Assembly (NCBI GenBank): GCA_964234715.1
Contig: OZ174281.1
Origin: Podarcis melisellensis
Lineage: Eukaryota
Length of the DNA: 64,000 nt
Strand: one strand, 5' to 3'
In this document: positions 950 to 28,333 of the stretch, in pieces
Layout: each line of letters starts with the position of its first letter
Position numbering within the stretch: the stretch's first letter is position 1
Position numbers and translations under genes: made by a program
Notes under the pieces: model-generated
Database searches by the model: none
What the model was told of the DNA's origin: nothing
Seen by the model: only the letters and a program-made list of their open reading frames with translations

Positions 950-1460
950 GATACGAAACGTCAGCTGCCAAGTGACTCCACGGGGACGGGACCCCCTCGT
1001 GGCGGCGGCGGCGGTTCCGGTCCACCTCCGGCAGGCGCTGCCCCATTCCCCTTGCGCCCTGCCCTTGCCTGACACGCACGTGACTCACCAATCTCAGGTA
1101 GCGCGAAGGCGCGGCGGGGCCTCGGCCCCAAAGCAGCCGCTGGGCGGCCCCGGGGATCCCGCCGGGGGAACGCCGGCAGCAGCCCCGCGACAGCCACAGG
1201 CAGCGGTGAGCCATAGTCGCCGAAACAGGTCCGGCGGCCCCAAAGCACCGCTCTCTTCACTCACTCAGTTACACAAACAGGCGAGCGGGTGGTTGGGGGA
1301 CCTTGGCCACGCCTCCGGCGCCGCGCGTGACGCCATCACGGCGCCCCATGACCCCTCCTGCGCGTGCGCGCAGCCTTCACCATGCTCCGCCTTTTTTGTA
1401 AGCCCCGCCTCTTTTTGGAGGCGTTGCGCTTGTTGCTCTCCGCCAGCCTGGTGCAAGAAC
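950..1460. promoter_or_regulatory. CpG island / AFG3L2 promoter and exon 1
   Basis: GC- and CpG-rich relative to the flanks. NRF1-like TGCGCGTGCGCGCA at 1359-1372; GC box CCCGCC near 1404. Confidence 0.75.
1089..1214 (-). CDS. AFG3L2: AFG3L2 (m-AAA protease subunit) coding exon 1, mitochondrial presequence region
   Basis: ATG at 1214 gives MAHRCLWLSRGCCRRSPGGIPGAAQRLLWGRGPAAPSRYLRL (42 codons), then a GTGAGT donor at 1088-1083 in phase 0. The MAHRCL start and Arg-rich, acid-free presequence match vertebrate AFG3L2. It lies in a CpG island, syntenic with PRELID3A and SPIRE1. The rest of the gene is left of the window. Confidence 0.9.
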
Positions 1461-2799: not shown

Positions 2800-3330
2800 A
2801 TCCCACGCTCGGCTCACGCCTGATGCAGCCGGCGCAGAGGCGCTACGGATCTGCAAACCCGCGAGGCAAAGCGAGTAGATCCACCGAGGAGTCAGGCAAT
2901 TGGGAAGAAACGGCGCGTTTCCAGAGCCGAAGCCCTGACGTCACTGGCGAGGAATGTGAGCTGGGCGTCCCCTGTTCAAGGACTCGACGCGTCCTTTCCC
3001 CGGGCATCGAAGGGTGCAGGGAGGCGGGAGCGAGCCGGGTGTCTTTCCAGCGGACAGGAGCGGCGATTGGCTGGCGCGGGAAAGAAGGGCGGGTGGGAGG
3101 CGGCTGACGTCATCGCCCATCCTTCTCGGGGGAAAAGCACCGCCCTTTCCTTTGGGCAGAGAAGCCGGTTCTTTCCATTGAGCCGCCATTAACGCCGCTG
3201 CTTTTACAGACAGGATGAAGATCTGGAGCTCGGAGCACGAGTTTCGGTAAGGCGAGGACGGGAGTGGCGCGCGTTCCGTCCTTGACAGCAGCAGCCCGCG
3301 CTGGCGGAGGGACAGAAAAACCGCTGGTTC
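2800..3330 (+). promoter_or_regulatory. CpG island / PRELID3A promoter
   Basis: CpG-rich. Palindromic CRE TGACGTCA at 2936-2943 and 3105-3112; inverted CCAAT (ATTGG 3066-3070); E2F-type GGCGCGGGAAA 3073-3083; GC box GGGCGG ~3087; YY1-like GCCGCCATT 3182-3190. Confidence 0.75.
3215..3246 (+). CDS. PRELID3A: PRELID3A coding exon 1 (MKIWSSEHEF)
   Basis: ATGAAGATCTGGAGCTCGGAGCACGAGTTTCG|GTAAGG; matches the PRELID3 N-terminus MKIWSSEH. Confidence 0.95.
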
Positions 3331-6150: not shown

Positions 6151-6627
6151 GACCAAAATTTATATAGCACTATATTCTGAAACTTACTAATTGTGCTGGT
6201 CATTTGGGGGTGTCACTTAAACTCTAGGTGCTTGAAGGGTTTGTGAACTGTCCTGAGATCTTTGGCTAAGTATATAAATTTAATAAATTATTATTATTAC
6301 TATTATTATTATGATTCAAAGGTCTTGCTCGCCAGATGTCGGCACTGGAGGATTTCCCAACTCTCTGGAGTAGATTTTAAGGATGGAGGGTTGCTGCAGG
6401 GGGACGAAGGGGAAGTCTCATTTTTGCAAGCAGAAATCTGTTCTGCTCTTGCAATTTCAGTATTGGATACCACCTTATACGTATACTACCCTTATGCCAA
6501 TGTGCTTACAGTAGTTAACAACCTAATAGACCAGATATGAAGAAAGTGACAGGGGAGGAAGAGAAAAATAAGCACATTCAGGTACCAACTCTTACATGAT
6601 ATTAAATACTGTGTTTCGGAATGTATG

Positions 6628-7110: not shown

Positions 7111-7359
<249 letters not shown>

Positions 7360-7593: not shown

Positions 7594-7818
<225 letters not shown>

Positions 7819-7906
7819 TGAGGCAATCCTTGCTTATGTTGGGAAAACGTTGCTGTAAGGGCATAGCAGGAACCAAGACTAGCATTCTCTGTGTATGCTA
7901 GATAAC

Positions 7907-7916
7907 TTTATTTATT

Positions 7917-7956
<40 letters not shown>
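7907..7956. repeat. (TTTA)n(TTA)n microsatellite
   Basis: Directly visible. Confidence 0.95.
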
Positions 7957-7957
<1 letters not shown>

Positions 7958-8727
7958 ATTTTTTAAAGAAACAGGCAGAAGATATAGAAGCATGATTAGT
8001 CACACCAACAGGGTAAAGAACAGCTTCTATCCGTGGGCTAGATAACAACAGGGCAACTGACTTTTGGGTTTGGTGGGTGTGCGTCAGTAAACAAGGGGAA
8101 TTAAGACTAAGAGAGCTGAGTGGGGGGTGCTCGTGTAATCTCACTGTATACAAGTTGTACAAGTGACAATAAAGTATTCCAATCTCAATTTCAATTGCTA
8201 GCTTTACTTTCCCTGATGAAATTATTTCTAGAGGATCCGAAAGTTCTTTATGGGCAGAATCCAACTTTGCACGAGTAGACTTGCAGTGGGACTTCACCAT
8301 CTCCTCCTCCTCCCTTTGTGCAGTCCCAAAGTCTGCTTCAGTGGGCCCCCAACTCTCTGGAGCAGAATTTGAGGGTGGGAGGGCTGCTGGGGGGAGAGCA
8401 GGGAAAGGCGAGTCCCTCCCACACACAAGCAGCTTTGGCTATGTGTGTGTAATTTGACTGGCTATACGCTACTTGAGGCTTGTAGTACAAGGCCAGGCAA
8501 TTGAAGCAGGCCAACAGGCCAAAACCATATATCCCGTACTCCCCATATGTCAATTCTGGCAGCTGGGTGGGGCTGCCCACCAGTCAATCACCTGGCACCA
8601 TCCTCATCATCATGTCATCAGGTGAGGGCTTCAAAGGAGTTCCCTCTCAGCACTGATCAACTGATGGGTGCTGAGAGAGCCCCTTTGAAGTCTGGTTTCA
8701 GCTGTGGTATGGATTCAGGCATAATCA

Positions 8728-8728
8728 T

Positions 8729-8779
<51 letters not shown>

Positions 8780-9057
8780 TTATTATTTTATTATTAGTTT
8801 CCTCAGCCACTCTGGGCGACTTCCAATCAAGTGTTAAAACCAATACAGCATTAAATATTAAAAACTTCCCTAAACAGGGCTGCCTTCAGATGTCTTTTAA
8901 AGAGAAGATAGCTGCTTATTTCCTTCACATCTGAAGGGAGGGCGTTCCACAGGGTGGGTGTCACTCCCGAGAAGGCCCTGTCTGGTTCCCTGTAACCTCA
9001 CTTCTCGCAATGAGGGAACCACCAGAAGCCCCTCGGTGCTGGATCTCAGTGTCCATG
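8728..9057 (-). mobile_element. L2-clade LINE 3' fragment with (AAC)n tail
   Basis: Minus strand encodes TLRSSTEGLLVVPSLREVRLQGTRQ, nearly the same as 28505-29000; microsatellite tail 8730-8777. Confidence 0.8.
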
Positions 9058-9533: not shown

Positions 9534-9604
9534 ATAACACTTACAAATCTTATATCAGTTGATGAAAGGTTGGTATATACGCCACACCCTGAGAACCCGG
9601 AAAA
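9534..9604 (+). CDS. PRELID3A: PRELID3A exon 4 ([23 protein letters not shown])
   Basis: tttaag acceptor, gtaagt donor; 71 nt. Confidence 0.96.
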
Positions 9605-9634: not shown

Positions 9635-9853
<219 letters not shown>

Positions 9854-11925
9854 TAAAACCTAAAACTAAAATCTTTAAGTGCATTATGCTAGCATTGGTG
9901 TCCCACAAGCCCAGGGTGCTCTCAATTATACACAGTTCACTGTAAGTCTTCAGATTGGATACTTTTCTTGTATTTGTGATGGTCTGTAGAGCCAGTTGTG
10001 TATTCTCAATCCGTATGTAGTTCCTTTTAAGATTCAAAACCATGTATGGTATGAAGTCAGGAAAAGTGATTGTTGCCTCTCACTGAGACAACAGCAGCTT
10101 AGAGCTAGAATGGGGGTAGGGCTGATAGTGTCTGGTTGTGTGATCAGGTTAGTCTTTCTTTCAGCTTGCAGTTCACAGAATCTCTTCTCAGGTTAGCTAT
10201 TGGCTTCCGCAGTGGGTTGCTTGAGCCAAATAGGTTTATATGGGAAGCAGGCAAATTGCCTCCTTACCCTTTTCAGTGCTGAAAGCAGAGGAGAGAACTA
10301 AGGAGATGTCATATATGAACTTTCCCTCATAACCCAGACACTTACTATGTACAGATTTCTCTTGCTTTCTACTGTGTACAAAATGGTGGGTGTGAGCACA
10401 TGTTCTAGTTGTCCTATTTGTAGTGTTGGAAAGGGAACTTATTCCACTTCCGATGGACAATAAACCAAATGCATACATAGGCTGTTAGTAGCAGAATAGG
10501 GGATAGATGAAAAGGAACTGTTCCCCTAAATGCTATGGGTGAAGAAGTTCTGCTATTACAGACTTCTGGCTGTGCAGTGGAACTTTCCATTCCTTTCCCT
10601 GTGTGCCCTCAAATTAAATTTGTATACTGTTCTTCATGCATAGATCTCAGGGCGGTTCACAGCATTAACCTGTTCTGGGAATTCCCTCAACCCTCCAGAG
10701 CATACTTTATATGCAAGCACTCCATGCATTAAAAGATACAGGAAGCTGAACTCCTGACCTCTTTCTCTGGCCCTCACCTCCCTCCTTGCCTTTCCTGCAG
10801 CTAGAAAACAACTATCTTGTTCGAGTAAAGATTATTTTCCCCCTTGCCTAAATGCAGCTGGGATGGGGATGGTCAATCCTGCCTCCACATGTGTTGTTTC
10901 ATCCTCATGCTCTAAAGCACCCTCCCCATGCTGCGGTGAGGTTTGTAAAAAGGTTCCTAGTTACTCTGACCTAATCGTGGCAGGCAAGGGGAGTGCTGTG
11001 TGTGGTGTGAGAGAGAGCATGGCATGGCCATGGCCACTGCTGACACAGGGCCCTCAGAAATGGGCTATAAGAGAACGGGACAGGCCCATCCCTGTTCTCA
11101 GCCTGCAACAATTCAGCATACTACACAATAAACCCTTTATTAAGTTCCATGGGACTTCCGTGGGTACATGGTTGGGATTTGACTATAAAACAGCAAATTA
11201 ATAGCTCAATCTTATAAAGAGTATTATTAAGGGGGAAATGAGCATTTCAAGTATTGTAATCCTAAACAAATATTTCTGTTCTCAGTCCTCCATGACTTCT
11301 GCACTTGTACAACAATAGATTACCATTACATTACAGGTCTCATTCGGGTGCTTTATTGTTTCTTCTTCGTTCTCTTTTAATGCTGTATAATGCAGCCTGT
11401 TTTAACTAAGTTTCCTTACAGGTGATCCCTCTCTCTTTACCTTTTCAACTTAGGGCCACTTCACACTGGCGTACTACCAGATTTCTAGGCAGAAGTTGCT
11501 CTATAGGGATCTGGTAGCACGTCAAGAGATTCCAAGTCTAGGATGAGATGCATCTGTCAGAAGTATGCATGCTCAGCTTGCTTTTACCTAACTTATTCTA
11601 CTGGGATGCCTATTGACGGAAATCCACTCCCACAGCCTATTTGTGTGTCTTCAGCATCCTGCTTTGGCACTCAGTTAAACATTTACATGGTATAATTGCT
11701 TGTTACCAATATTTGATAAGCATGGTGCTCAACTAAGTCAAACTCAAGATAAGCTTAGTCATAACAGTTACATCCATTCACTTTCAGTAGGTTTACTTGG
11801 ACTTAGTTGGATATCACTCTCAGTTTACAATGCTTGATTTTCCTGTAGGCTCTTGAGATTTACAAGACTGTGATGGTGGAATAACTTTTTGTCATAAGCT
11901 GTACATCTTTTCTGTGTTACTCCAG

Positions 11926-11979
11926 GGGTGGGATGCTATTGAGTGGACAATTCAACATTCTGACAGTGTTCTAAGATAG
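11926..11979 (+). CDS. PRELID3A: PRELID3A last coding exon, form A (GWDAIEWTIQHSDSVLR*)
   Basis: actccag acceptor, phase 0, TAG stop. Resembles the mammalian PRELID3A C-terminus (GWAAIEWII..., recalled) and gives a 172-aa protein. Confidence 0.9.
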   Translation, partial: GWDAIEWTIQHSDSVLR

Positions 11980-12810
11980 CAGTCTCTTTCTACAGCTGCA
12001 TTTTTTACTAATTAGTGGTAATACCAGCATTTGTTACCTTGGTACAGCATTTCAGCTTCTAGCAAATCTGTGCATGTTGATGTCATGTTACTTGAAAGCC
12101 TGCATGCCTCGTATATATACACACATTGCATATAGAGGAACAGCACCCTTATTCTTTAACTCTGGAATTTGGAGGCGTCTATACTGTCTAATGCTTTGAC
12201 GCAGGAAAAGGTTCTTAAGAACCTGCATGTGTGGGCCACTAATGAGGCCCACCTTCTGTTCTTTGGTAAATCTCTTTTGAGTAAGTGGAATACTGTTAGA
12301 AGAACTGTTGCATCTTGGCCCCAGAGTTTTTTTGGAAGTAGGTGAAGCTCTGAACAACCAGTCCTCCAGTATGGCAGTTCTTGCCTATCAGTGTAGAAAT
12401 ACAGTCCCATCACTGCTTGGACAGAAGGGTTCTTGTTTAAAAGAAAGCAGTTTATGAAGTCACAATTAGAACATTTGCGCCTGTTTCCTTGGTCCTTGTT
12501 GGTTTTTGCTTTTGAGGCAGCTTAAAATCCGTGCAAAAAGAATGCAAAAAGAAGAAACTGGTTTTCAAAAGTGCCAGCTATTAAGCTTTATTGTCGCTCA
12601 GCGCATTTTGGAACTGTCATTCCTCCCTCTTGGTGCCTGAGAGGCAGCTGCATTTATGTAAGTTGCTTCAGAAACTCCAAGATTGATCCTGAAGAAGGAA
12701 CTTCTGTTCTGAAACACGTTGTACTATCATAAACTTCAGCAGTTGGCACTTGTGAGAATTGGGTTCTACTTTTTCTCTTCTTTGCATTATTTCTAGTGTC
12801 TGGGCCTCCC

Positions 12811-12883
12811 TTTGTTTAGTCGTTTAGTCATGCCCAACTCTTCGTGACCCCATGGACCAGAGCATGCCAGGCACTCCTGTCTT
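12811..12883 (-). mobile_element. RTE/BovB LINE extreme 3' fragment
   Basis: TTGTTTAGTCGTTTAGTCATGCCCAACTCTTCGTGACCCCATGGACCAGAGCA matches the recalled BovB 3' terminus in reverse orientation. Confidence 0.7.
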
Positions 12884-14801
12884 ACTTTATTTTAATAAGG
12901 CAGGAATCATGCAAAACCTTTTGGCTGCACATTTTTGTTATGAGCACGAGCCTCACTCTCCTCTCCCTGCATTTTGTGAGGGGAGGTTAGAAGTGTTCAC
13001 TTGCAGTTTTGCCCCAACATGGCCAACTGTGGTTTACTTGTTTGCAAAACCAGGATTGGATCCTGGATGTGGGGGAACATGAATTGCACATATCAGTTTG
13101 TTTTCTGATCCTGTTATGGCAAACTACAATTTGTTGCAGACTAGAAGTTGAAATAGCTTCTCTTCCTTCACATGTAAATGGGGAACACGGGGAAATATAT
13201 GAACAACAAACCATGATTCATTTTTTCACATCTAAAATCCAGGCTTTTATCTAAACATACACTAATATATAAATAATTTTGCTATAACAAAGCAGATGTT
13301 TTTGTCTAAATGCATTGTTTTAAGAGGCATTGCTAGCATCTGTTTGACTTGCGAGGAACCTCAGTGACCACCTTTTTCGTTCCTTGAGCTTGACTGCCAA
13401 GCTTGGAAACCCTCAATTTTCATTTGCGGAATACAGTTACCAAACATGCCTTAGTGTTGTATAATACTTAACTACTCCCAATTTTGGAGTGTGTGTATAT
13501 ATTACAAAAAAAAAAAAAATAGTAAACTCTCACTGTATGTTTTCAGTTTTACCATTAAGCCTGTGAAATGTTTCAGAGTTTAAAATTTTATGCTCTCAAT
13601 CGTTTGTTAAGTAGTAACCACTGAAATTATGTCCAGTTCTTAACTCTCATTCTGTATGTTCAGTGTGCTACCACCATGTACGTAAATATATTAAAAGGTG
13701 CATGCTTTAATTGGAAATATGCTTGCTCAAGTCATATACTAATATGCTGTTTTATTGTACAACAGAAACTCAGTAAACCAATCCTCTGTCAGATTGTTTT
13801 TGCTAGTTCCGTGCATGTTAAAAAGAACCCCGGTCTTTTTGGTCCAACATTTTGTTTTTAAAGGCTTGCCAGATGTCTATGGGAAGCAAATAAGTAAGTC
13901 ATCAGCCCAATAGACCACTCTAACTAAGGTCATTTCAAACTCAACAAAATCGTGCAATGTGCTCAGTTACTATATAAACGAATGACTAGTCCTCCCAAGG
14001 AACGCTGGCCAGACTGGATCAAACTTGACATCTGCTCAATTATGTCACATGCAGCTGTATATATTGTTGTTCCTGAAATAATTACTGGCATGGCGGAGTC
14101 TGATGGGGACTTTTCCCATTCAGATCATGGTGAGTGGGTGGAAAGATAAGCCTCCTCTCCCTACTGGTTGCCTTCCCAGTAAGAATCTGTCTCCCTGTGA
14201 ATGTAATATTTGAGATGCATACTACATATTAGGCAAATGTCTAGTTTGTTCCTAAAAAACCCACAGAGTTCCACCCTCTCCTTTAAAGAAGCTGCAACCT
14301 AGTTCACCCCACCAATGTGCTTAGAATCTACTCAAACCAAGCTGCCATTTCATTTCTTAGAATATGTTAAGATGTATGTGTGCTATACTTTAAGCCCCAA
14401 CACGTGTATTTAGTGTTATAGCATGGAGGTTTGTCGATCAAAAGCACTTGGTGCAATAATTCCTGTTAGTTCCTATCTCCCATAGCAATCCTGTGAATTT
14501 CTTCATTTGACATGTCATATGTCTGTTATTAGTGGGGCCCTTTTTATTCTTATCTAATGCTTTGATTTTTAAATCCAACTTGTGCAGTTTCTAATGCTCA
14601 GAACTTCATTCAGTTGAAGGATTGGGTTAAAGGTGGTTAGTTCTGACCCGAGGCCAGGAATGGAAAACACTTCAAACTGAATGGTGTTTTCAAAAGTAAC
14701 AAATAATTGAAGAAATTAAAATAATTCTGGCCAAGTGCTTTGGGTCATTTGCACACTACAGTCTTTTCTGCAGGAAATCATCCAGTAACAATTACTATAT
14801 A

Positions 14802-14994
14802 GTCCAGTAGCACCTTAGAGACCAACTAAGTTTGTTCTTGGTATGAGCTTTCTTGTGCATGCACATGAAAGCTCATACCAAGAACAAATTTAGTTGGTCT
14901 CTAAGGTGCTACTGGACAATTTTTTAATTTTTTTTTAATTTTTTATATATATTTCTACTGCGTCAGACCAACATGGCTACCTACCTGAATCTAG
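14802..14994 (+). mobile_element. Penelope-like retroelement remnant with inverted terminal repeat (116-bp palindrome)
   Basis: 14802-14917 is self-complementary. The right arm and tail (GAAAGCTCATAC...TTAGTTGGTCTCTAAGGTGCTACTGG...CAGACCAACA.GGCTACCTACCTG) match 20816-20919. Possible 8-bp target duplication AATTACTA (14790-14797, 14995-15002). Confidence 0.75.
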
Positions 14995-16582
14995 AATTAC
15001 TAGAATTGTTTGGAGAAAAACATGGTTGTGATATTCTTAGAAGCCCAGTATAAGATTACAGTGTAGATAAGCCCAAAGGCTGTTTCTTCAATCTATTGGT
15101 TCATTACACTTTTTATTTCAAAACTAAGGATGACTTCCAGTTAACTTGTTCCATCAGCACAAGGATTTTCACTTGCAGAAGGAAACCTCCCCCCTCTTCT
15201 TTCACTGTGCGTGCCCCATGCCCTCCCCAAATCTGCTTTATAGGGTTGGGGGTACAGCAGAACAGACTTAGGGGGGTGCCAGGGAAAGGAGAGGGGGTTA
15301 GTTCTGTTGTGCATATGGAAATCTGCACACTGACAGAGCAAGCTAGTTGCTTTGTCACAGTTTGTATATTTATGTTTCAAAGAAATTAGCTATAGTCCAG
15401 GTAATAAGAGGAGAGGCGGTTCTTGAACAAAGGTATCTTTTGATCACATGCTAAGTGGCCTTTTGCATCTGGCCAAGTGATTAGGCTCCTAGCCTGAAAA
15501 CTTATGGAGGCTCTCACTTTTTTGTTGAGTTTCTCTACTTGAGCTTACTGAGGTTTTCTCCTCAGTTCCACTAGTGCAAGCAATTTTAACTATGCATAAG
15601 AACTTACCCTACCTGCACACCCTCTAAATCTGCCCTGAAGGGTTGAGGGCAAACTCAAAAAATATTTAGAGGGTGTGAAGGTTGAAGCAGTTCCATTGTG
15701 CAGCCAGGAGTGCTTGCACTGGTGCAACTATTGAGTTGAATACTTCCCAGCATGTGTTTCAAGCTCTTCTTATTTAGGTTTGCCTTCTGTCGCTGGGGTG
15801 TAGCTGGTCTTTAGGCCCAGTTAAACTGAATTCTTGCAAAAGCGGTGCTCTTGCTTCCCACGTGGCTCTGTACTGAGCATCAGTGATGGTAACTTAGTGT
15901 TTCATGATAGAGAGTAAACAGGATGGGAAAGAAACCGTAAACTATAAGTTCATTAATAACGTTCATTAGGACTTGTAACAACTTTTCCATTGCTAGGATG
16001 AAGCGGAAGAAATTGAAGGGGGGGAAATATTATTGGTGGGAGAAGGGCTAGTATTAGGCCTCATGTCTGTTCTGTTGCAATCTTACCATGGTAATGGAGG
16101 AAGCCACAGAAATGTGATAGAAAAAATTTCAGGTTGTTCAGAGGCATGCTAGGGATAAGAAGCAAATGATGCTTTGCACTTTGGAAAAAGTGAGTAGTCA
16201 AAACTCTCTCTAGCACTGATCCAAGTGCAACAGTCTCTTGTAATTGTGCCTTGCTAGACAGATCTAGCATTTGTACTCTGCAAAAGAGCTAGCTTGTAGT
16301 CTTGTAACTTTGTTGGCCTATTATTACTAAGAAAAATGTATTGTCTAAGCAGATCACCCTTCAATTTAAGGTCTTCTTGTTACAGAAGCAAAGGTGGATT
16401 AGAATGAAATAATCTCGTCGTACAAATTCAGTGGCACAATTCATTATGATACATTCATAATTCAGAAGACAACAAAGCAGTTTGCTTTGGAAGATCTTTT
16501 GGTGTCTGACAGAGGAAAGATTTAGAAGTTTAACATCAATGTATCTGGTCAATCCACTTAGCTCTTGTGCCTTCTTTAACAG

Positions 16583-16675
16583 GGTCGAGAAGCCTTGGAA
16601 TGGGTGATTGGCGAACTAACTTCGACGCGAGAGAGCATGAAGTCCGCAATGGCAGCAGCTTCAGCGGAGGACTGA
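16583..16675 (+). CDS. PRELID3A: PRELID3A alternative last coding exon, form B (GREALEWVIGELTSTRESMKSAMAAASAED*)
   Basis: cttctttaacag acceptor, phase 0, TGA stop. Resembles the PRELID3B/SLMO2-type C-terminus (GREAMEWVI...MAAA, recalled). Would give a 185-aa protein. CpGs are retained in a CpG-poor background. Confidence 0.8.
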   Translation, partial: GREALEWVIGELTSTRESMKSAMAAASAED

Positions 16676-19600
16676 TGGAACTGTGACAGAACTTTATTTT
16701 TCCATTATATTTTCTCCTTGCCAGGATGGATATTCCATTGTTTTTTATTTAGAAATATATATGTTTATATAATGAAATTTTACAGGTCAGAAGCAATCCC
16801 CCCTCCCCCCCCGCACCAATTTTTAAGCCTTTGTAGGGCCCTCTATTTGTCCACAGTGTAAGTTAACAGGTTTTTTGTTTTTTTTTTGGCTTTCCCGTGG
16901 CCTCTAGTTACAAGTGCCCAAATTTGATAGAGTATAGTGACCTTAAATCCTACTGAGGTTAAATGGATGTGGAACTGGCAGAGCAGATTGAAGATCGACA
17001 TCTACATAAGTACCAAACTGTGCCTTGATCAGAGCTGAGAGAATAGACTTCCCATCTTATATAACCATTTTCTTGTACTTGAAATTTATTTATTTATTTC
17101 TTTAAAAGTGCAGCTGCCGTTCTTATTCTGTAAACGACAAATAGGTACAGAAAGCACTGGGGATCTCTCTCTCTCTCTCTACAGGCTAGATAAGTATAGT
17201 GAGGAGGTGAAATGTGATGGCACAGGAGGTTGACTGACACCTGATGTGATCGTCTATGTGGTTCTGCAACACAACCTTCCTTTTACTTAGTGGAGCCTGA
17301 AAGAAGATCTGAACAACCTTCCCTAAAATGAAGGTTGGTGTGCAACAAAGTTCCATGGTGGATTGTGCCCTTTGTTGGAGGCTGGAGATCTCCTCCTGAG
17401 ACTTTGGATTTGTGGATATTAATTCTTCTTTGCACTGTTCAAATGCAGATTCTGAACAAGGTGTTCTAGCATGTTACCTCCTAGTATTTATACTGAAACC
17501 ACTGAGAGCAGCCATTTTGTTGTGGTAAAAATGGCTTGTCAATTTTTGTTTTTATTTTTCAGTAGCTAGTTTATTTCCATATATGTGAATATACCCTCTT
17601 CACTTATTATGTGAAGACAATTGATACCTCAGTGGGAAGTACTAGGAAACTTATTTTCTATATGTAATGGGCATATGTTTGGAGTACTTAGCTGTGTAAT
17701 TCATTTCTTTTAGCAATGGATACAAGACCATAAAGAATATTTATGGCCCACCCCCACATTTCACACCCATCTTCTGGCACTCTGTTTAGCAGTTCCAGGG
17801 AGGAGACTGTTTCATAGTGGTAGGGGGAATGTGATGTTGTGAAGCACAACCACCTCTCCCACCAAGCCAACAGCTTTCATCATTGAGCCAGTTCAAACTC
17901 CATTTCTGACCTCTGATTTCAATGGAATTTTCTTCTGTACAACATCTAGAAGTAATTCTATTGAAGCCGATACGGAGAGAGCACTTGCTTAAAACTAGGT
18001 TATGATGGTAGTAGCCCTAGATGTTCCACATAGAAGATTAGAGAAAAAAGAAGAGTGAATAGCAAGCTTTTCAATGGAATTATTTTGAATTGTTACTGGA
18101 GCCTTTTTTGCTCCCTGCCTGCCTGTCCCCCCTGCCCTCACCAGCCTGAATAACCCACGCATTAACAGTTTTTAAGCCCTGGCAGAAAAAGAGCTTTTTT
18201 TAATATGACCAAAGCATTTTTCTTCCGTTTCAATATACTTTGTACAAAGAATAGTTGGATTACAAAGAGCCTGCCTTCTGTGAAGGGTATCAGGCCCGTC
18301 ATGGGAGAGGTGGTGTGGCTGAGGCAGAGAAGTTCAGCATTCTAGCCCATATGTGTGTTCATTTCAAGAAGTGGACCAGTTAACCAAAGTCACCAGCTTT
18401 CATATGGAATCCTTCACCCCACTTCCTTTATTTTGTGTGAAGGTAAACTTGTCCGTGCTTATTCATGTGCACTTCTTTCTTCTGTCTTCTATAGAATCGT
18501 GGTTGTTTCCTTTAATAGTCCTACTCCTGTCTCCTAAAGGCGATTAGCCACACTGTTTCTTACCTTTGCTCTTTCTTGTTCCTTCCACGGATCTTGGCTG
18601 ATGGAACTCTCATATGACTGCAGCTCCACAGACTGTCACTTGGTGTCTTGCTTGGTGCGATGTTGTCTCTTAAGGCTGTTCTCTTAGTTCCCTAGTGGAT
18701 CTTGGAGCCCACAAACCTCCGGGCAGGCAAGCTTGGCACTATTGCTTTTATATTGTTTGCTTACCAAATAATGACCACAGTCTTACATTTTCCTGGCTAA
18801 CACATATTTATTAGATATTTAACATGGCACAGGAATATGGGCTCCTTTGGGAGGAAGAGCAGGCTAGAATCTAATAATAAAATCATGGAAAATAAAAATA
18901 CGTTGCATTTTCACTCCTTAGCATGTGAAAATAGAGCATGTGCTCTTTCGATCATGGCTGCCACTACCCTTGCTTCTTGCCCCTTCACATCTTCAGTTAA
19001 AGCACTCCATGCTTTTCCTTTGTCCTTGAAGGCCCCAGCATTCTCTGTTCTAGGTGACTGGAAATCAAACCTTTTTATATCTAGTAGCTTATCTACCTTC
19101 CTGAAACTTACCAAAACCTCACCTGTAGGGTTTTTTCCTTTTGTTCTCTCTTGCTGTACCATCTTCTGCCCCTGAACATTCCAAATAACCCACCCTTGAA
19201 GCTTTATAAAATCAAAAATACATAAGCTGAGAGAATCTGCATCGCTTCCCACACAAGTATTGGCTGAGTGGGACAGTACACAAAGGGATGGGGGGGGGCA
19301 ACGTTTAGGACTTTGCCCATTCAGCCTTTTCCTTCACCCTGCAAGGTCAGGATTTGCTTCACTTTAGGAAGAAGCTATTCTTCCAGTGACAGCACCTTTC
19401 TGAATAGGACTCTGAAGAGAGCATTTTAAAACTTGTTTCCAGGCTCTGTCTCACAACTGTTACATTCAGTGAGAAAATTGCCATGCATGCCATGTGTCAT
19501 TCCAGGGTAAGGAGAGTCTCTAGCTACTAAATCTCTTCCTGTCTCGTGGTTATTTGAAGGAAAGACAGTAGTTTTCAACAGATAGCAGTAGCCTTAACTG

Positions 19601-20790
19601 ATACCTAAAGTTCTGTTGGCCAGTTTCACTAACAAATACTGATATTTGTCTGGAGAACTGGGTGTTAGACAGTACACTGTCTCCTGCTGCACTTTTTGTT
19701 TCTATGTGCAAATAAAGGCAAAGCTTCTGTACTTCTAAGAATTATGTAGCACAGGGAGCTGAAGCATGTCAAGCACAGACGAGGAGAAAACTGCAATTGT
19801 TGAAACGGTATAGTGGTCCTGTCTTTCTTGGCATTTGGTCACAATTCTTTGTTTAATCCGAACTACCTTGATAATTCAAAAACCACTGCTTTTCATTATG
19901 TAAACAACCTTGATTAACACTGCTTTCATGCAGGTGCCATTCATGTGAAGGTGTGCTTGTGGGGAGGGGAGCGAATGCTTAATCAGCTGTGACTTGAAGG
20001 ATAATTGCATGCAGAAATGTTTCTCTTCCTGTATCTCTTGCCTTTTTCCACCTGCGTTTAGACTGTAAGCTCTTCCGAGCAGAGCATCTCTCTATCTGAA
20101 ATGTTAAATGCTATGGACATCTGGGGCTATATATAACATGACCTACTTAAAAATAGCAAACTGTCTTTTCTTTTTTTATATACAGTAAAACAAAAGACTG
20201 CTTTTGTGTTAACTGCCAAATGGGATGATCATGCAGTACACAACTGAGTCACAAACACTAAAAATAGCACAAGGGAGGCCTGTAGGTGCCGCCCTGGAAT
20301 TAACCAGCCCATCATCGCAGTTAAGAGGTTTTGGGAGAGTACCTTGGCAGTCATTAATTGTGGCTGAACTATTAATACAATGCTTTTATGTTATTGCCAC
20401 AGCTAGGGCACACAGAAAATTTAACCTCCTTTGTTACATTGGTACTGCTAAGATGTACCCTTTTAAAAAACAAAAGCTCAGCCTTCACTTCCTTTTCTCC
20501 CAGAATCCTACTAAATACAAGAGGTATTATTTTGCATAAACATGCAAAGGATTGTACTATGTATCTATTGAGAAAGCGGAGCTTGTACATTAGCTTCCTT
20601 AAAGAGTTATTGGGGATGGAGACATCAAATAACTGGAAGTACGATTTAGCAAAATAAGATGAGGGACCCGTCTTAATTGTGCAGCCATCAAGGTGGTGAT
20701 TGTAAATCTTGTGAAATCAATCAGTGAAACTTAATTCTAACCTTTGGGGGAAGTCCCATTCTCATGTGTTTACATAAATAGCGGAAAAGT

Positions 20791-20919: not shown

Positions 20920-22058
20920 TAGCGGAAAAGTATGCAGTGGTACACACAATTTTATTTCTGCAATATTGAAAAACGTATTGATCTGATGAAGCAATGAAGA
21001 CATCAGCACAACTTTTAGAATAGGTTTTGTTTGTTTTTTAATTTGTAATGCATAAACTGCATATCAGTATTACATAACAGGAAAACAAGCAAATGGCTAC
21101 CCTGGTGCATCAGAAGCCATATAAAAACATGCACAGTGACATCACATAGGAGGAATTGAAGAACTAACTTTATCTTGTGCTTCTAGTTGTTTTTCTTAAA
21201 GGTATGCTGTTCCTCAACCCTGCAACTATACATAATTAAGAGGATTTTGATGGATGCAAATTTGACTGAGAATTTTGCTTTCTAATATATAAGGTTACAC
21301 AACTGAGATTTGAAACTTATGCCTAAAGGAAGTCATAAAATGGGATTTAAAGGATATTGAGTTTTCTTAGCCTAGTATGCTGATAGAATTTAGTTATTAA
21401 ACGAAGCAATAAGATGAGCACGTTTTTTAGAGAATCTGTAAGTTATTTCTCCTGCCAAATATATTTCAGCTTAGTTTTACCTTTCACTATTTTTACTCCC
21501 ACTCTTCTCTCAAGGAGCTCAAGCTGGCAGGGCTGGGTGGCTTAATTTATCCTGATGACAGCCCTGTAAGCAGGTAAGACTTTTTAAAAGACTGGTGTAC
21601 CCAGGGTCACACATTATGACGGAGAAGGAATTTGAACATGCATCTCCGAATGGTTGGTGGGTAGCTTGTAAGTTGCTTTGGGTTGCCTTGGGCAAGATAA
21701 AGTGACTGACGAATTTAATTCATTAATAATAATATCCATTCACATGATGTTTGTAAATTAATTTACCCGCATACACACCACAAAAATGAACACGTGTTGC
21801 TTGTTGATTTAGAGGCCATATAGTAGACCTTCTTTTGCCACCCCTGCTTCTTACCATAAACTCACAAGTGCAGAGCTCTATCCTTAGTTCTCTGCTTGCT
21901 TTCTAAAGCCAGCTAACTAGGAGTTGGCAACATAGCTGAAGACAGGTGTGGGAATTGAAAGCAGCATTCCGCTTCCTTCCCTGGGGCAATTGGTCCTTAA
22001 CAAGGGAGACCTAGGTTTAACTACTGCTTTCACACTTGCAGTGCAGGATCGGTAAAAA

Positions 22059-24339: not shown

Positions 24340-27300
24340 GCTTAAAAAAAATAGCCCATTAAAATTGCTTTATTGCTGTTCTTCAGATACATCTGACAGA
24401 TTTTCTTCCTTTCATGCAGCCCAAGCAAGTACTAAAATATTCATTTCAAATATTGTACAGACTTATAACAAATTATTAACACAGACAAAAGCTATGACAG
24501 AAAGGTGTTTTTATTTTCCTCATATTTCATATTTAAATAAAGGATTTCAACCAAAATAATAATAGAGTAACATTGTCACCAGGGATGCATAAAAGTTCTG
24601 TCTGCACACCAAGGCATTGCAAAGGCTTTGTCGCCACCTTCTCCAGAGCGGAGCTAGCTTGGAATTTCCCACAAAATATTTTCATGTACAAAACACACAA
24701 TCATTTTACTGGATGCAGGTTTTCTACAATACACTTGGGGTACTTCCTAGATTTATTAGTAATTAGAAAAATAAATGCTTTAAAGTTCTTATGGTGCCAA
24801 GTTTGCTGTTCTAGATAGCCTTTCTCCTCTTTAAAACTCATTTAAACATTGGTAGGATTTCTGATAACACAGAAGTTGGCTCATTTAGCTTATTTTAAAT
24901 TTCCTCTTCACTCTTCATGAGAAGGTTGAAGTTAATATATTTTACACATATTTACAAGTTGATATGACTATGTTGAAACAGAGTAGGGCACCAAAAAGCT
25001 TCACGTTACAGGCAGCTTCCTGTGATATGGAGAAACAGAGTGAATATCCTTATTACTTGGACCACAGTTGGAATATTAATGGCAAGGTGACAAGAATGTT
25101 ATGTCACATAACACAACACTCAAGGAACCAAATTTCTCCTCAGGCTTCAAACAACAACTTTGTGGAACTTCCTCCCCCAAATTAAAGGCCGGCATATTTC
25201 CTTCATCCTGAGAGAAGGAGTCAAAGAGGAAATGAGAAAGGCAAAGGGCACTTGGAAAGTGGTGACTGAAAAATATCGAGCTTGCTAGTGGCAGTTTCTA
25301 TTAAGATCGAATGCTGCATGTGGCTGTAAGTGCATTGTCAAAGGGAAAGAAAGAAGGAATTGTGTTGTCTGTGTGCAGGGATAAAATTATTGAGACAAGT
25401 AAGCGGCCTCCGCTTATATCACTGGCATTCAAAGTGACTCACACTGTCAGCACTTCAACCTCAAACCCCTCACCTTAGAATTTGAGGGGCCCTCTACCAG
25501 AAAGATCCCCACTTCACTCCCTGTAATTTGACTGGACCCGTAGGAGCACCAAAGTTCATTTGTGCAATACTAATAAAGAGCCTAGAAAATCTAAAGAATA
25601 TTTAATAGAACAAGGCGACGACATGAGTCCCAGCCACATTTCACAAGGAGAATTCAGGCATTTGTCTGAACACGTGAACTCTGTATCTGTAGGCAGGAGA
25701 TAGCACATGCAAGCCCTGCCCCACACATTTGTTCCAAAACTTCTCCACGTTGAGCAGGATAGGTCTATAAGGGCATAGTACTTGCATTCCCTTAAATGTG
25801 AGTAGAACATCATGCATGATTGGGTACTCTGCTCAACCTGGGGAAGGCTGGAGACTGAGTGTGTGAGCTGATATAGATGGGGTTGTTGGGAGTAGGCTTT
25901 CCATCCATAGATGCATTTGTGTGTCCAGGCACATATCAGAATACACCTTATTTCTCTAGAAAAGTGGCTAGACAACCGGTTCTTAATAAAGACCCCAGAT
26001 TGAGGAAATAGAGCAGGTTAGCTGCATGGAAGGAGAAGAGATGACATAGAAAACCTGGAAGGGTGAGAATCTCCTAGCTGATGCCTCACCTTACTGGGAG
26101 CCATTGCTGATGCCTTTGTGAGGTGACCCCTTTGCTTCCATAAAATTTGTGGCATTTATTAATAAACTGTAGCAAAATATAAAAGGAACAGGTGCTCTCA
26201 GTCAATTTTTTCCAAGCTGATTAATGGAAAAAAGACTATAGTCTAACAATACTTCTCGGTCTGATGTCATCACAATGCAATTTTATCATGTCAATTAACA
26301 AAGTGAAATTTAACTTCTGCTGTTATTGACCATGGGTTATGTCCATTGGTGGAACTCTTGTGGCTTTCCCTGTAGGAGTGTTTTATTTTGCCAGTGAGAA
26401 TTCCTCAATTGTGCCAACAGTGCCAGTTTTGTCTGTAGTGTAGACACGACCTACATTTGTTTATCCAATGAAAATAGAGTAGTCCCACTGTCTTGGCTGA
26501 GTTGCTTAAGAATAATTGGACCAGAGACCCCATTGCATCCTAAGACCCCAAACATTAGTGCTTGTGCAGTTAGTTAAATTTCAGATATTAGAGCAGCAAT
26601 ATCAGGCGTTAAGTCTTTACATAGTAGCTCTATTTATTGGCCTCTAATGTTTTGGTTTTCTTGGAAGATAAGATTCATTTCTCAGCGTATTTTCATTTAA
26701 AAAATGTCTGGATAGAGGTTGCATTAAAGCAGATTCTGCTTATTTTGGAAGTGAACTGAGATGTATCTCATCAACCTAAAATGTGAAAATGAAAATTCAA
26801 ATATTTGAATCCTTCCTATCATATACTGAATGCTGATATTAAAAACGTGAAAGGATTATTGTTCCTGTCCACTGGATGATTTGCAAATATTTATAACTGT
26901 GCTGTTATAAATATAAAAACAACCTAGCTGCACACTCTACACTAAGCCCCAGTTTGTTTACATTTAAAAATCAGAATATAAAAGAGTGCAAAAATGTAAT
27001 GTTTGGTAATATTCCTGGAACTTCAAAACAGCTAGACAGTGTTTCTCCAAACCTTAAAAAAAACCTACCTCTCAATCTGAGACACTCCTGCCTCAAATTT
27101 TTGCAGGGTATAAAATTTCTTTACAGCCAAGATACAAACCCCTATAAAAATGGGGCTTATAATGGATATGCTTCCAGACCCTTAATTATAGCAGTACTTA
27201 GGTGTTCTACTATAATACAAATATACATATGATCTATTTTCTCAGGATTGTCACCCAGAGAATGTTCTTAATTTTACAAAAAACTCATTAATATTAAAAA

Positions 27301-28074
27301 GTTGCACTTATCTTGCATCCCCTCCATAGAGAGTATTTTGCTTATGTCTAAAAGCTACAACTAACAACTACTGCAACTAACATTCAGAATACATTCAAGA
27401 TAGGGAAGAAACTGCTATTACTTTAGACATAACACACTTATCATTATACTGGAACAAGTAGCAGCTGCAGGAAATAGTTACCCAATCCAGGCTTCTTAGC
27501 TTATTCAATATTTTATTCTAGAACCCAGACAGTATAAACTATCTAGTTTGGATTGATCGACCATGCTGAGCACATCCTTTAAAGCTTTGTGCTATACCAT
27601 AAGGCATTAAGAGCCATGGCCCCCGTCAGGTTTCTGTACAAGCATGGGCTTGTACAAAGACTGAAATGTAAATGTTAGTTGGTAGTAAATGCCAGCATAG
27701 TTCGATAATTACAACTGTGCTAACACCATTGTGTAGTTCCGTAACTATATTTTGACTCTTTTCTTGAAAATTATCGAAGGAATGAAGACTAGAAAAAATA
27801 ATGCAAGTAAAGGCGCTCTTTGTACACTGTGCCACATACAAAAAGGCAACAATTTCAAACGGACATTTTCTTCCTGTGCAAACAGTTTTATCTACTGACC
27901 TGCTGCATAGCCCATTTTCTTACTTTCTCTCTGTGTATAAATTATGGAGAGGCAAAACCAGTGATCTAATGCAAATGTAAGCTGTCAGGTGGAACAAAGG
28001 AAAAAAAGACATTCTGGTTTCACTGAGTTCTCTCAAGACTTCATGAATACAAAGCAAAGAGAAAGGCACACAGC
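24340..28074 (-). other. SPIRE1: Probable long SPIRE1 3' UTR; candidate AATAAA at 24369-24374 (minus strand)
   Basis: AT-rich, repeat-poor sequence downstream of the stop codon. The end point is a guess among several AATAAA hexamers. Confidence 0.35.
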
Positions 28075-28333
28075 TCAGATCTCATTGATAGTCCTCTCAG
28101 AAGGGCAATACTCCGAGGTGCCTGGGGAGGACATGTAGAATGACTGGGTTTTCCTTTTTAATCTGGCTCGCTTGTTAGCCAGGGAGAGGCTGCGGCGGCT
28201 TGAATTGATGATTTCCGAAATGAACTTTTTGCAGTCCACACATACTTCCATGGTGCTCCAGTCCTCCATTAGCTCTTTTGGAAATAGTGCTTCTTCATCT
28301 GATTTATCTACAGACTTGGACTTTGAGGATAAC
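28075..28333 (-). CDS. SPIRE1: SPIRE1 last coding exon ([42 protein letters not shown]...PSERTINEI*)
   Basis: tttcag acceptor; TGA stop at 28075-28077; conserved SPIRE1 C-terminus. Confidence 0.97.

Follow-up and report, generated by a model that had tools for sequence, protein, structure and literature searches.

Homologous alternative endings of PRELID3A in a lizard, old and conserved across reptiles and birds

PRELID3A (SLMO1) is a PRELI/Ups-type lipid-transfer protein of the mitochondrial intermembrane space, and human SLMO1/PRELID3A is, to our knowledge, the least understood of the PRELI proteins. Here we describe the end of the PRELID3A gene in a 64-kb stretch of DNA from the lizard Podarcis melisellensis (hereafter the window), on whose plus strand the exons were mapped. 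The reading that we prefer, with a probability of about three in four, is that the protein is finished by either of two homologous and conserved last exons, A and B, which compete for the splice donor at 9796 (Table 1). Both exons would encode the last turns of helix α3. Exon B would be the ancestral SLMO-type end, which carries the helix on and adds an alanine-rich tail, and exon A an old vertebrate duplicate whose stop codon lies eight residues past the motif shared by the two. We infer that exon A is used in this lizard, that the choice between the exons is regulated, and that the two isoforms may differ in lipid transfer or localization.

Two homologous endings follow exon 5

The initial annotation had noted two phase-0 acceptors behind exon 5, each opening a frame that ends in a stop codon, and this is how the sequence reads. 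Exons A and B share an upstream donor, are entered in the same phase and each contain a stop codon, which is the arrangement of alternative last exons. The coordinates of exons 1–5 sum to 155 codons, which would give proteins of 172 residues with exon A and 185 residues with exon B, the lengths proposed earlier. The motif G-x-x-A-[IL]-E-W-x-I has only two matches in the six reading frames of the window, one in exon A and one in exon B, so that a chance occurrence is negligible. The residues G156, A159, E161, W162 and I164, which are invariant in the family, are present in both, and the view of A and B as homologous endings is borne out. Being homologous, adjacent and in the same phase, the two exons have the properties of a tandem exon duplication, and in tblastn searches each peptide weakly picks up the other exon across species.

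The best match of the A peptide in the Protein Data Bank (PDB) is the C-terminus of human PRELID3A (4xzv, 8ag0; expectation value (E) 0.06) and that of the B peptide is human PRELID3B (6i4y; E 0.5); these values are weak because the peptides are short. The matches agree with the assignment of A as a 3A-type and of B as a 3B-type end. The sequence GR-x-A-M-E-W-[VI]-I followed by a long tail also occurs in divergent representatives of the family (P0096, P0112, P0115, P0129), which points to the B type as the ancestral state, as the initial annotation had it.

Both endings are old and already annotated

We compared the window with the PRELID3A loci of a gecko (the sole squamate among them), pigeon, green turtle, Xenopus laevis, marmot and medaka. 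The pair is not special to this lizard: gecko, pigeon and green turtle all have the complete arrangement, and both endings are annotated as isoforms. The gecko locus resembles the window in order and in spacing, with A ~2.1 kb past exon 5 and B ~4.6 kb further. Exon A is intact behind an AG in all six loci. It was the sole ending recovered from marmot, Xenopus and medaka; in marmot, the one mammal compared, a search of the 10 kb downstream gave no B-type exon.

Protein databases give a similar picture. Among the best 120 relatives of bird PRELID3A found by a word search, 112 have a B-type tail; they include more than 100 birds (~192 residues), turtles, Crocodylus, tuatara (193 residues), the gecko Paroedura and the newt Lissotriton. 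The tail of coelacanth PRELID3A is also B-like. In public annotation, B is the standard ending for birds, turtles, crocodilians, tuatara and geckos. When the tail of ostrich isoform X5 was used for the search, A-type tails were found among squamates in the gecko Heteronotia (172 residues) and in Thamnophis, a snake, as well as in ostrich and the softshell turtle Pelodiscus, and also in many frogs, elephant shark, all mammals listed and teleosts, the last with a few extra residues after the A-type tail. The best 120 matches to the gecko B tail, mostly from birds and from PRELID3B, contained no mammalian PRELID3A and no entry from squamates other than geckos, which, for the best 120 alone, says little about absence.

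Both endings are already public as isoforms in NCBI predicted models, B-type in Paroedura picta (X2) and Eublepharis macularius (X2), and A-type in Heteronotia binoei (X2), Thamnophis elegans (X3), Pelodiscus sinensis (X2) and Struthio camelus (X5). As in the window, the same two endings follow the same SSNARK junction in these sauropsid isoforms. This prior annotation removes the novelty and leaves the observation standing: the alternative endings are real, old and conserved across reptiles and birds, and they are not new. A search of the literature found no paper that discusses alternative endings of PRELID3A/SLMO1.

The age of exon A had been misjudged. It was proposed to be a late duplicate that turned into the mammalian ending, which is contradicted by the A-type ends annotated in elephant shark, teleosts, frogs, turtle, gecko, snake and ostrich. 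Judged by these sequences, A is best described as a shortened duplicate that arose before the jawed vertebrates radiated. The common ancestor of sauropsids had both endings, and so, probably, did that of lobe-finned fishes and tetrapods.

Some isoforms have 15–25 extra residues between exon 5 and exon B (hoatzin P0258 and P0264, hummingbird P0260, Gekko kuhli P0350), and in these species B may be preceded by a small additional exon or be entered through an acceptor further upstream. The predicted isoforms X3 of Gavialis (P0003) and X3 of Chrysemys (P0004) enter B in a shifted frame via other exons, and B is therefore the common terminal exon of several transcript models. A cluster look-up of such odd representatives gave no lizards; the isoforms with extra exons that it returned were from birds, crocodilians and turtles.

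Exon B is used in the RNA of related lizards

We compared assembled contigs of four sequencing runs (X1, X5, X6 and X13, from four studies and three coded organisms) over positions 11850–17849. None of the listed runs that contain this stretch is recorded as RNA. The contigs are ~2–5% unlike the window and hence come from relatives other than the source animal. In all four runs, contigs covering exon B at a depth of 34–124x start at 16581 and extend past 17849, continuing for 740–2640 nt beyond it, towards the poly(A) signals of the B form (Table 1). A contig of the upstream intron, at a depth of 6–16x, ends at 16610 in all four runs and thus overlaps the exon B contig by 30 nt; from intron to exon the depth rises about 2- to 20-fold, varying between runs. 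This 30-nt overlap together with the depth step is the pattern of a k = 31 assembly graph at a splice acceptor, and the runs therefore behave as RNA. That the branch lies at 16581 and not at 16583 fits an upstream exon with AG at its end and a different base before it, as in exon 5 (AAAG at the end of exon 5, ACAG in the intron). An upstream exon that ends in GTG would not fit this position.

Exon B itself has a single listed difference, the synonymous change GGC>GGT at position 16612, which one organism carries; the 3′ untranslated region (3′UTR) beyond has many substitutions and indels. Three bird proteins derived from Logan transcript contigs of 2.2–2.6 kb run from exon 5 straight into B. 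Exon B is used, and it is the dominant ending in the RNA of the sampled lizard relatives, which is a new but small point.

Might the depth from 16581 mark the end of another transcript, for example a long minus-strand 3′UTR of SPIRE1? Logan contigs are unstranded, and the X1 contig from exon B runs to ~20.5 kb, towards SPIRE1. However, the start of the high depth falls exactly on an AG acceptor in four of four runs, and exon B is open, in phase, conserved, annotated as the end of PRELID3A in many species and present in the bird transcript contigs, which makes this explanation scarcely credible.

The reading as a minus-strand transcript end was rejected, there being no minus-strand AATAAA within 10–30 nt; the nearest ones, at 16693 and 16744, are >110 nt off.

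On its way the X1 contig passes the AATAAA sequences at 18876, 18891 and 19711. Several blocks at 20–25 kb are conserved with gecko, among them 20050–20179, 21091–21150 and 24361–24979. The 3′UTRs of PRELID3A and of the convergent SPIRE1 gene may abut or overlap. Within the interval between A and B, contig depths reach thousands to tens of thousands at 12650–13049 and 14650–15049 in all four runs, with loose contig ends at 12812/12883 and 14803/14865; these high-depth stretches look like high-copy interspersed repeats.

A conserved module surrounds exon A

Exon A lies in a conserved block that reaches ~55 nt into the preceding intron and ~140 nt past the stop codon. The block is 88% identical to gecko and 84% identical to pigeon (11888–12088), compared with 85% and 80% for exon 2. 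No stretch of PRELID3A, other exons included, is better conserved than exon A and its flanks, which is a new but small point. A putative donor, GTG/GTAAT, lies 38 nt after the A stop codon, and lizard, gecko, pigeon, turtle and Xenopus all retain it. In marmot, the locus in which B was not found, this site is degraded, and medaka has a strong donor-like site, CTG/GTAAGC, in the matching place. Further downstream are two copies of TGCATG, the type of motif bound by Rbfox proteins. The pair occurs at matching places in the window, gecko, pigeon and turtle, and one copy each is present in marmot and medaka. The last intron has seven TGCATG on the plus strand, against ~1.6 expected from base composition and ~3 at the average density of the window. 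A second, distal conserved island contains a ~20-nt stretch (~13775–13795) that is invariant in lizard, gecko and pigeon, and could be the end of an A 3′UTR or an intronic regulator.

The pattern of conservation around A is one typical of regulated alternative exons. In reptiles and birds, exon A and its flanking motifs are under strong constraint at the nucleotide level, which points to a regulated and probably tissue-restricted use of A. The module of donor-like site and TGCATG motifs after A is a new but small point.

The same module allows a different reading of exon A, as a 92-nt cassette exon (11926–12017) that carries a stop codon and is spliced to B, which then serves as 3′UTR. Its inclusion would be driven by Rbfox-type factors acting on the two downstream TGCATG, and the protein outcome would still be 172 or 185 residues, the switch then lying in inclusion of the cassette and not in the selection of a last exon with its poly(A) site. 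Apart from the conserved donor-like site, this is consistent with the TGCATG pair at conserved positions ~55 and ~85 nt downstream of that site and with conservation that ends ~100 nt past it, as is usual for regulated cassette exons. The 50-nt rule also counts for it: with only 38 nt between stop codon and junction, the transcript would escape nonsense-mediated decay. On the other hand, a joint of 12017 to 16583 is absent from the four runs, although exon A lacks exon-level depth there, and in mammals A is presumably the last coding exon. An A 3′UTR could instead end at the distal island, which is conserved and has ATTAAA (13690) where pigeon has AATAAA. In teleosts, the alignment of a transcript (L008) with medaka ends at the donor-like site, where divergence of the 3′UTR is indistinguishable from splicing. 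Taken together, we consider the cassette possible but unlikely. The same tentative, rather doubtful standing applies to its evolutionary extension, in which A would be an Rbfox-controlled cassette, mammals would have lost B and frozen A as the last exon, and the ancestral PRELID3A would have been two-tailed, with the SLMO2-like form the main one in reptiles and birds.

Is exon A used in this lizard?

Several observations weigh against two competing last exons. In the four runs, contigs pass unbroken through 11926 at intron-level depth (0–8), and an exon 5-to-A joint is absent from their reads and contigs. Between exons A and B the window contains ATTAAA, at 13690 and 14715, but no canonical AATAAA, which makes it uncertain that A is a true last exon and at the same time speaks for the cassette. 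The exon 5-to-B junction was itself unseen and is deduced from the contig start, and the RNA evidence consists of contigs of relatives, from runs labelled RNA by guess and with tissues unspecified. Finally, three of the last six residues of exon A differ between the window and gecko, with one synonymous change. The initial annotation had proposed to look for the two junctions in RNA: for B, the contig start marks the acceptor in four of four runs, with the partner deduced, and for A, no joint was found in these runs, while A-type ends are annotated in other species. No excess depth was seen over 11980–13700 in the four runs either. Contigs drop rare forms, and the silence of exon A in these runs therefore says little about rare use.

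Such observations would also fit a lineage in which exon A is unused and only B is made, A being a silent relic or a regulatory sequence. The four runs, which cover three related organisms, have neither exon-level depth nor a graph break at 11926, and the last six codons of A have three amino-acid changes against one synonymous change; both points are in line with this. However, no other part of the gene is as well conserved as the A block, where reading frame, stop codon and acceptor are all intact, and A-type isoforms are annotated in gecko and snake. One of the three changes (A to V) is common to the window and snake, so it is not a sign of private decay, and rare variants are lost from contigs. 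We therefore regard disuse of A in this lineage as improbable and retain the choice between two last exons as the preferred reading.

Changes particular to this lineage

Exon B of the window lacks ~24 nt, in frame, that are present in gecko, tuatara, turtle and pigeon (~8 residues of the helix extension). The gap is located just past the shared motif, between codons 10 and 13, and exon B encodes 30 residues as opposed to 37–38 in other B-type isoforms of reptiles and birds. The first ten codons are nucleotide-identical to gecko. No indels within B are listed for the RNA contigs of the three related organisms, which probably share the deletion. The loss of eight codons in frame is a new but small point. 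The last residues of exon A in the window are likewise unlike those of annotated A-type isoforms elsewhere.

Gene identity, neighbours and layout

Exons 2–5 cover positions 1–142 of the 157-position Pfam PRELI profile (PF04707), so that the final ~15 positions of the domain are supplied by whichever last exon is joined. Exon 2 alone scores 62.6 bits on this profile against a cut-off of 27, which places the protein in the PRELI/Ups family. Its PDB matches are PRELID3B (E 1e-27) and PRELID3A (E 3e-27), and also Ups1 and PRELID1. As exon 2 is about equally close to human 3A and 3B, orthology rests on the neighbouring genes and on full-length relatives. The gene order AFG3L2 - PRELID3A - SPIRE1 agrees with the PRELID3A loci of gecko, pigeon and Xenopus; in Xenopus, the SPIRE1 match falls just ahead of the called start of a KIND-domain gene downstream of PRELID3A. 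Full-length relatives were reached via exon 2 through Passer PRELID3A, which is 95% identical there, and the nearest relatives of the Passer protein are named PRELID3A, PLD3A or slowmo homolog 1, with two exceptions, a Chelonia entry mislabelled 'slowmo like protein 2' and one unnamed entry. By neighbours and full-length relatives, the gene is assigned as the lizard orthologue of PRELID3A, and PRELID3B is excluded.

Two side features of the layout are noted. Trinucleotide and pyrimidine-rich microsatellites occur at 8731–8790, ~6280–6310 and 7900–7960, in introns 1 and 3 and ahead of exon 4; these repeats are non-coding, and translating them gives strings of Q, N, Y or L. At the junction of exons 1 and 2 (3215–3246/7179), the window reads ...SEHEF-R-HPW where nearly all relatives have ...SEHVF-G-HPW, which amounts to two lineage-specific substitutions.

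Table 1. Features of the PRELID3A region in the window, and corresponding exons at the loci compared
Feature	Position	Strand	Remarks
AFG3L2 first-exon region, upstream divergent gene	1133..1214	-	Aligns to the end of a gecko (L001) gene with FtsH, AAA and Peptidase_M41 domains
PRELID3A exon 1, coding part	3215..3246	+	ATG at 3215, donor GT at 3247; conserved with the gecko locus
PRELID3A exon 2	7179..7347	+	Pfam PRELI positions 1-52, E 5e-17
PRELID3A exon 3	7648..7737	+	Pfam PRELI positions 58-82
PRELID3A exon 4	9534..9604	+	Pfam PRELI positions 83-105
PRELID3A exon 5, shared donor exon	9694..9796	+	Ends AGA AAG, phase 0, followed by gtaggt; PRELI positions 107-142
Conserved block around exon A	11871..12119	+	~55 nt of intron, exon, ~140 nt after the stop
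Exon A, coding part, proximal short 3A-type ending	11926..11979	+	After ccag; 17 codons + TAG; phase 0
Donor-like element GTG/GTAAT	12012..12023	+	GT at 12018-12019; 38 nt after the A stop; putative donor
Two TGCATG	12071-12076, 12101-12106	+	+145 and +175 from the A acceptor
Distal conserved island	13640..13840	+	ATTAAA at 13690; TGCATG at 13699 and 13812
Exon B, coding part, distal long 3B-type ending	16583..16675	+	After acag; 30 codons + TGA; phase 0
B-form 3′UTR	16676..18900	+	AATAAA at 18876 and 18891; exact 3′ end inferred only
SPIRE1 exon, downstream convergent gene	28069..28296	-	tblastx 82% over 76 residues against Xenopus (L002)
Gecko Paroedura locus (L001)	exon 5 13231, A 15404, B 19967		Each after AG, open
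Pigeon locus (L005)	exon 5 9347, A 11257, B 15064		Each after AG, open
Green turtle locus (L007)	exon 5 4800, A 6741, B 11950		Each after AG, open
Xenopus laevis locus (L002)	exon 5 present, A present		B not found within 10 kb
Marmot locus (L004)	exon 5 present, A present		B not found within 10 kb
Medaka locus (L006)	exon 5 present, A present		B not found within 10 kb

The protein end and its relation to known PRELI proteins

A structural model of the B-type PRELID3A of tuatara (mean predicted local distance difference test score 85) has a single helix from residue 138 to residue 191. Confidence is ~85 up to about residue 170 and falls to ~50 at the end. The exon junction lies between residues 155 and 156, and with the invariant residues of the motif present in both A and B, either ending should complete the fold. 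Past the shared motif, there are 8 residues in A, 21 in B of the window and 29 in B of other sauropsids; the deletion in the window lineage falls where the helix leaves the confident core of the tuatara model.

Helix α3 forms one jaw of the lipid entrance, and in PRELID3B it is long, with 34 residues (PMC6408443). In one study, human SLMO1, which bears the short A-type end, neither rescued fly slmo nor localized to mitochondria in HeLa cells, and SLMO2 did both (PMC11649117). A functional difference between the A and B isoforms is plausible on these grounds. The PRELID3A gene of reptiles and birds mainly makes a long, SLMO2-like end, as opposed to the short A-type end of human SLMO1, and its two isoforms are a natural pair for probing what the C-terminal extension does for lipid preference, localization or stability. 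Given that the isoforms are already publicly annotated, we see the finding as a useful pointer for the PRELI field and not as a discovery.

Both endings have counterparts in known systems. The C-terminus of human PRELID3A/SLMO1 (172 residues), the end of helix α3, corresponds to exon A of the window. Exon B matches the GREAMEW... helix extension of human PRELID3B/SLMO2, a phosphatidylserine carrier of 194 residues, which differs in being the product of a paralogous gene, whereas the protein body and the neighbouring genes in the window are those of 3A. Yeast Ups2 has a poorly conserved C-terminal extension after α3, and many of the Ups2 variants that had acquired transfer of phosphatidic acid were truncated in this C-terminal region (PMC6408443). 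A tail that modulates lipid preference therefore has a precedent, with the difference that in Ups2 it was brought out by mutation in yeast and not by alternative splicing.

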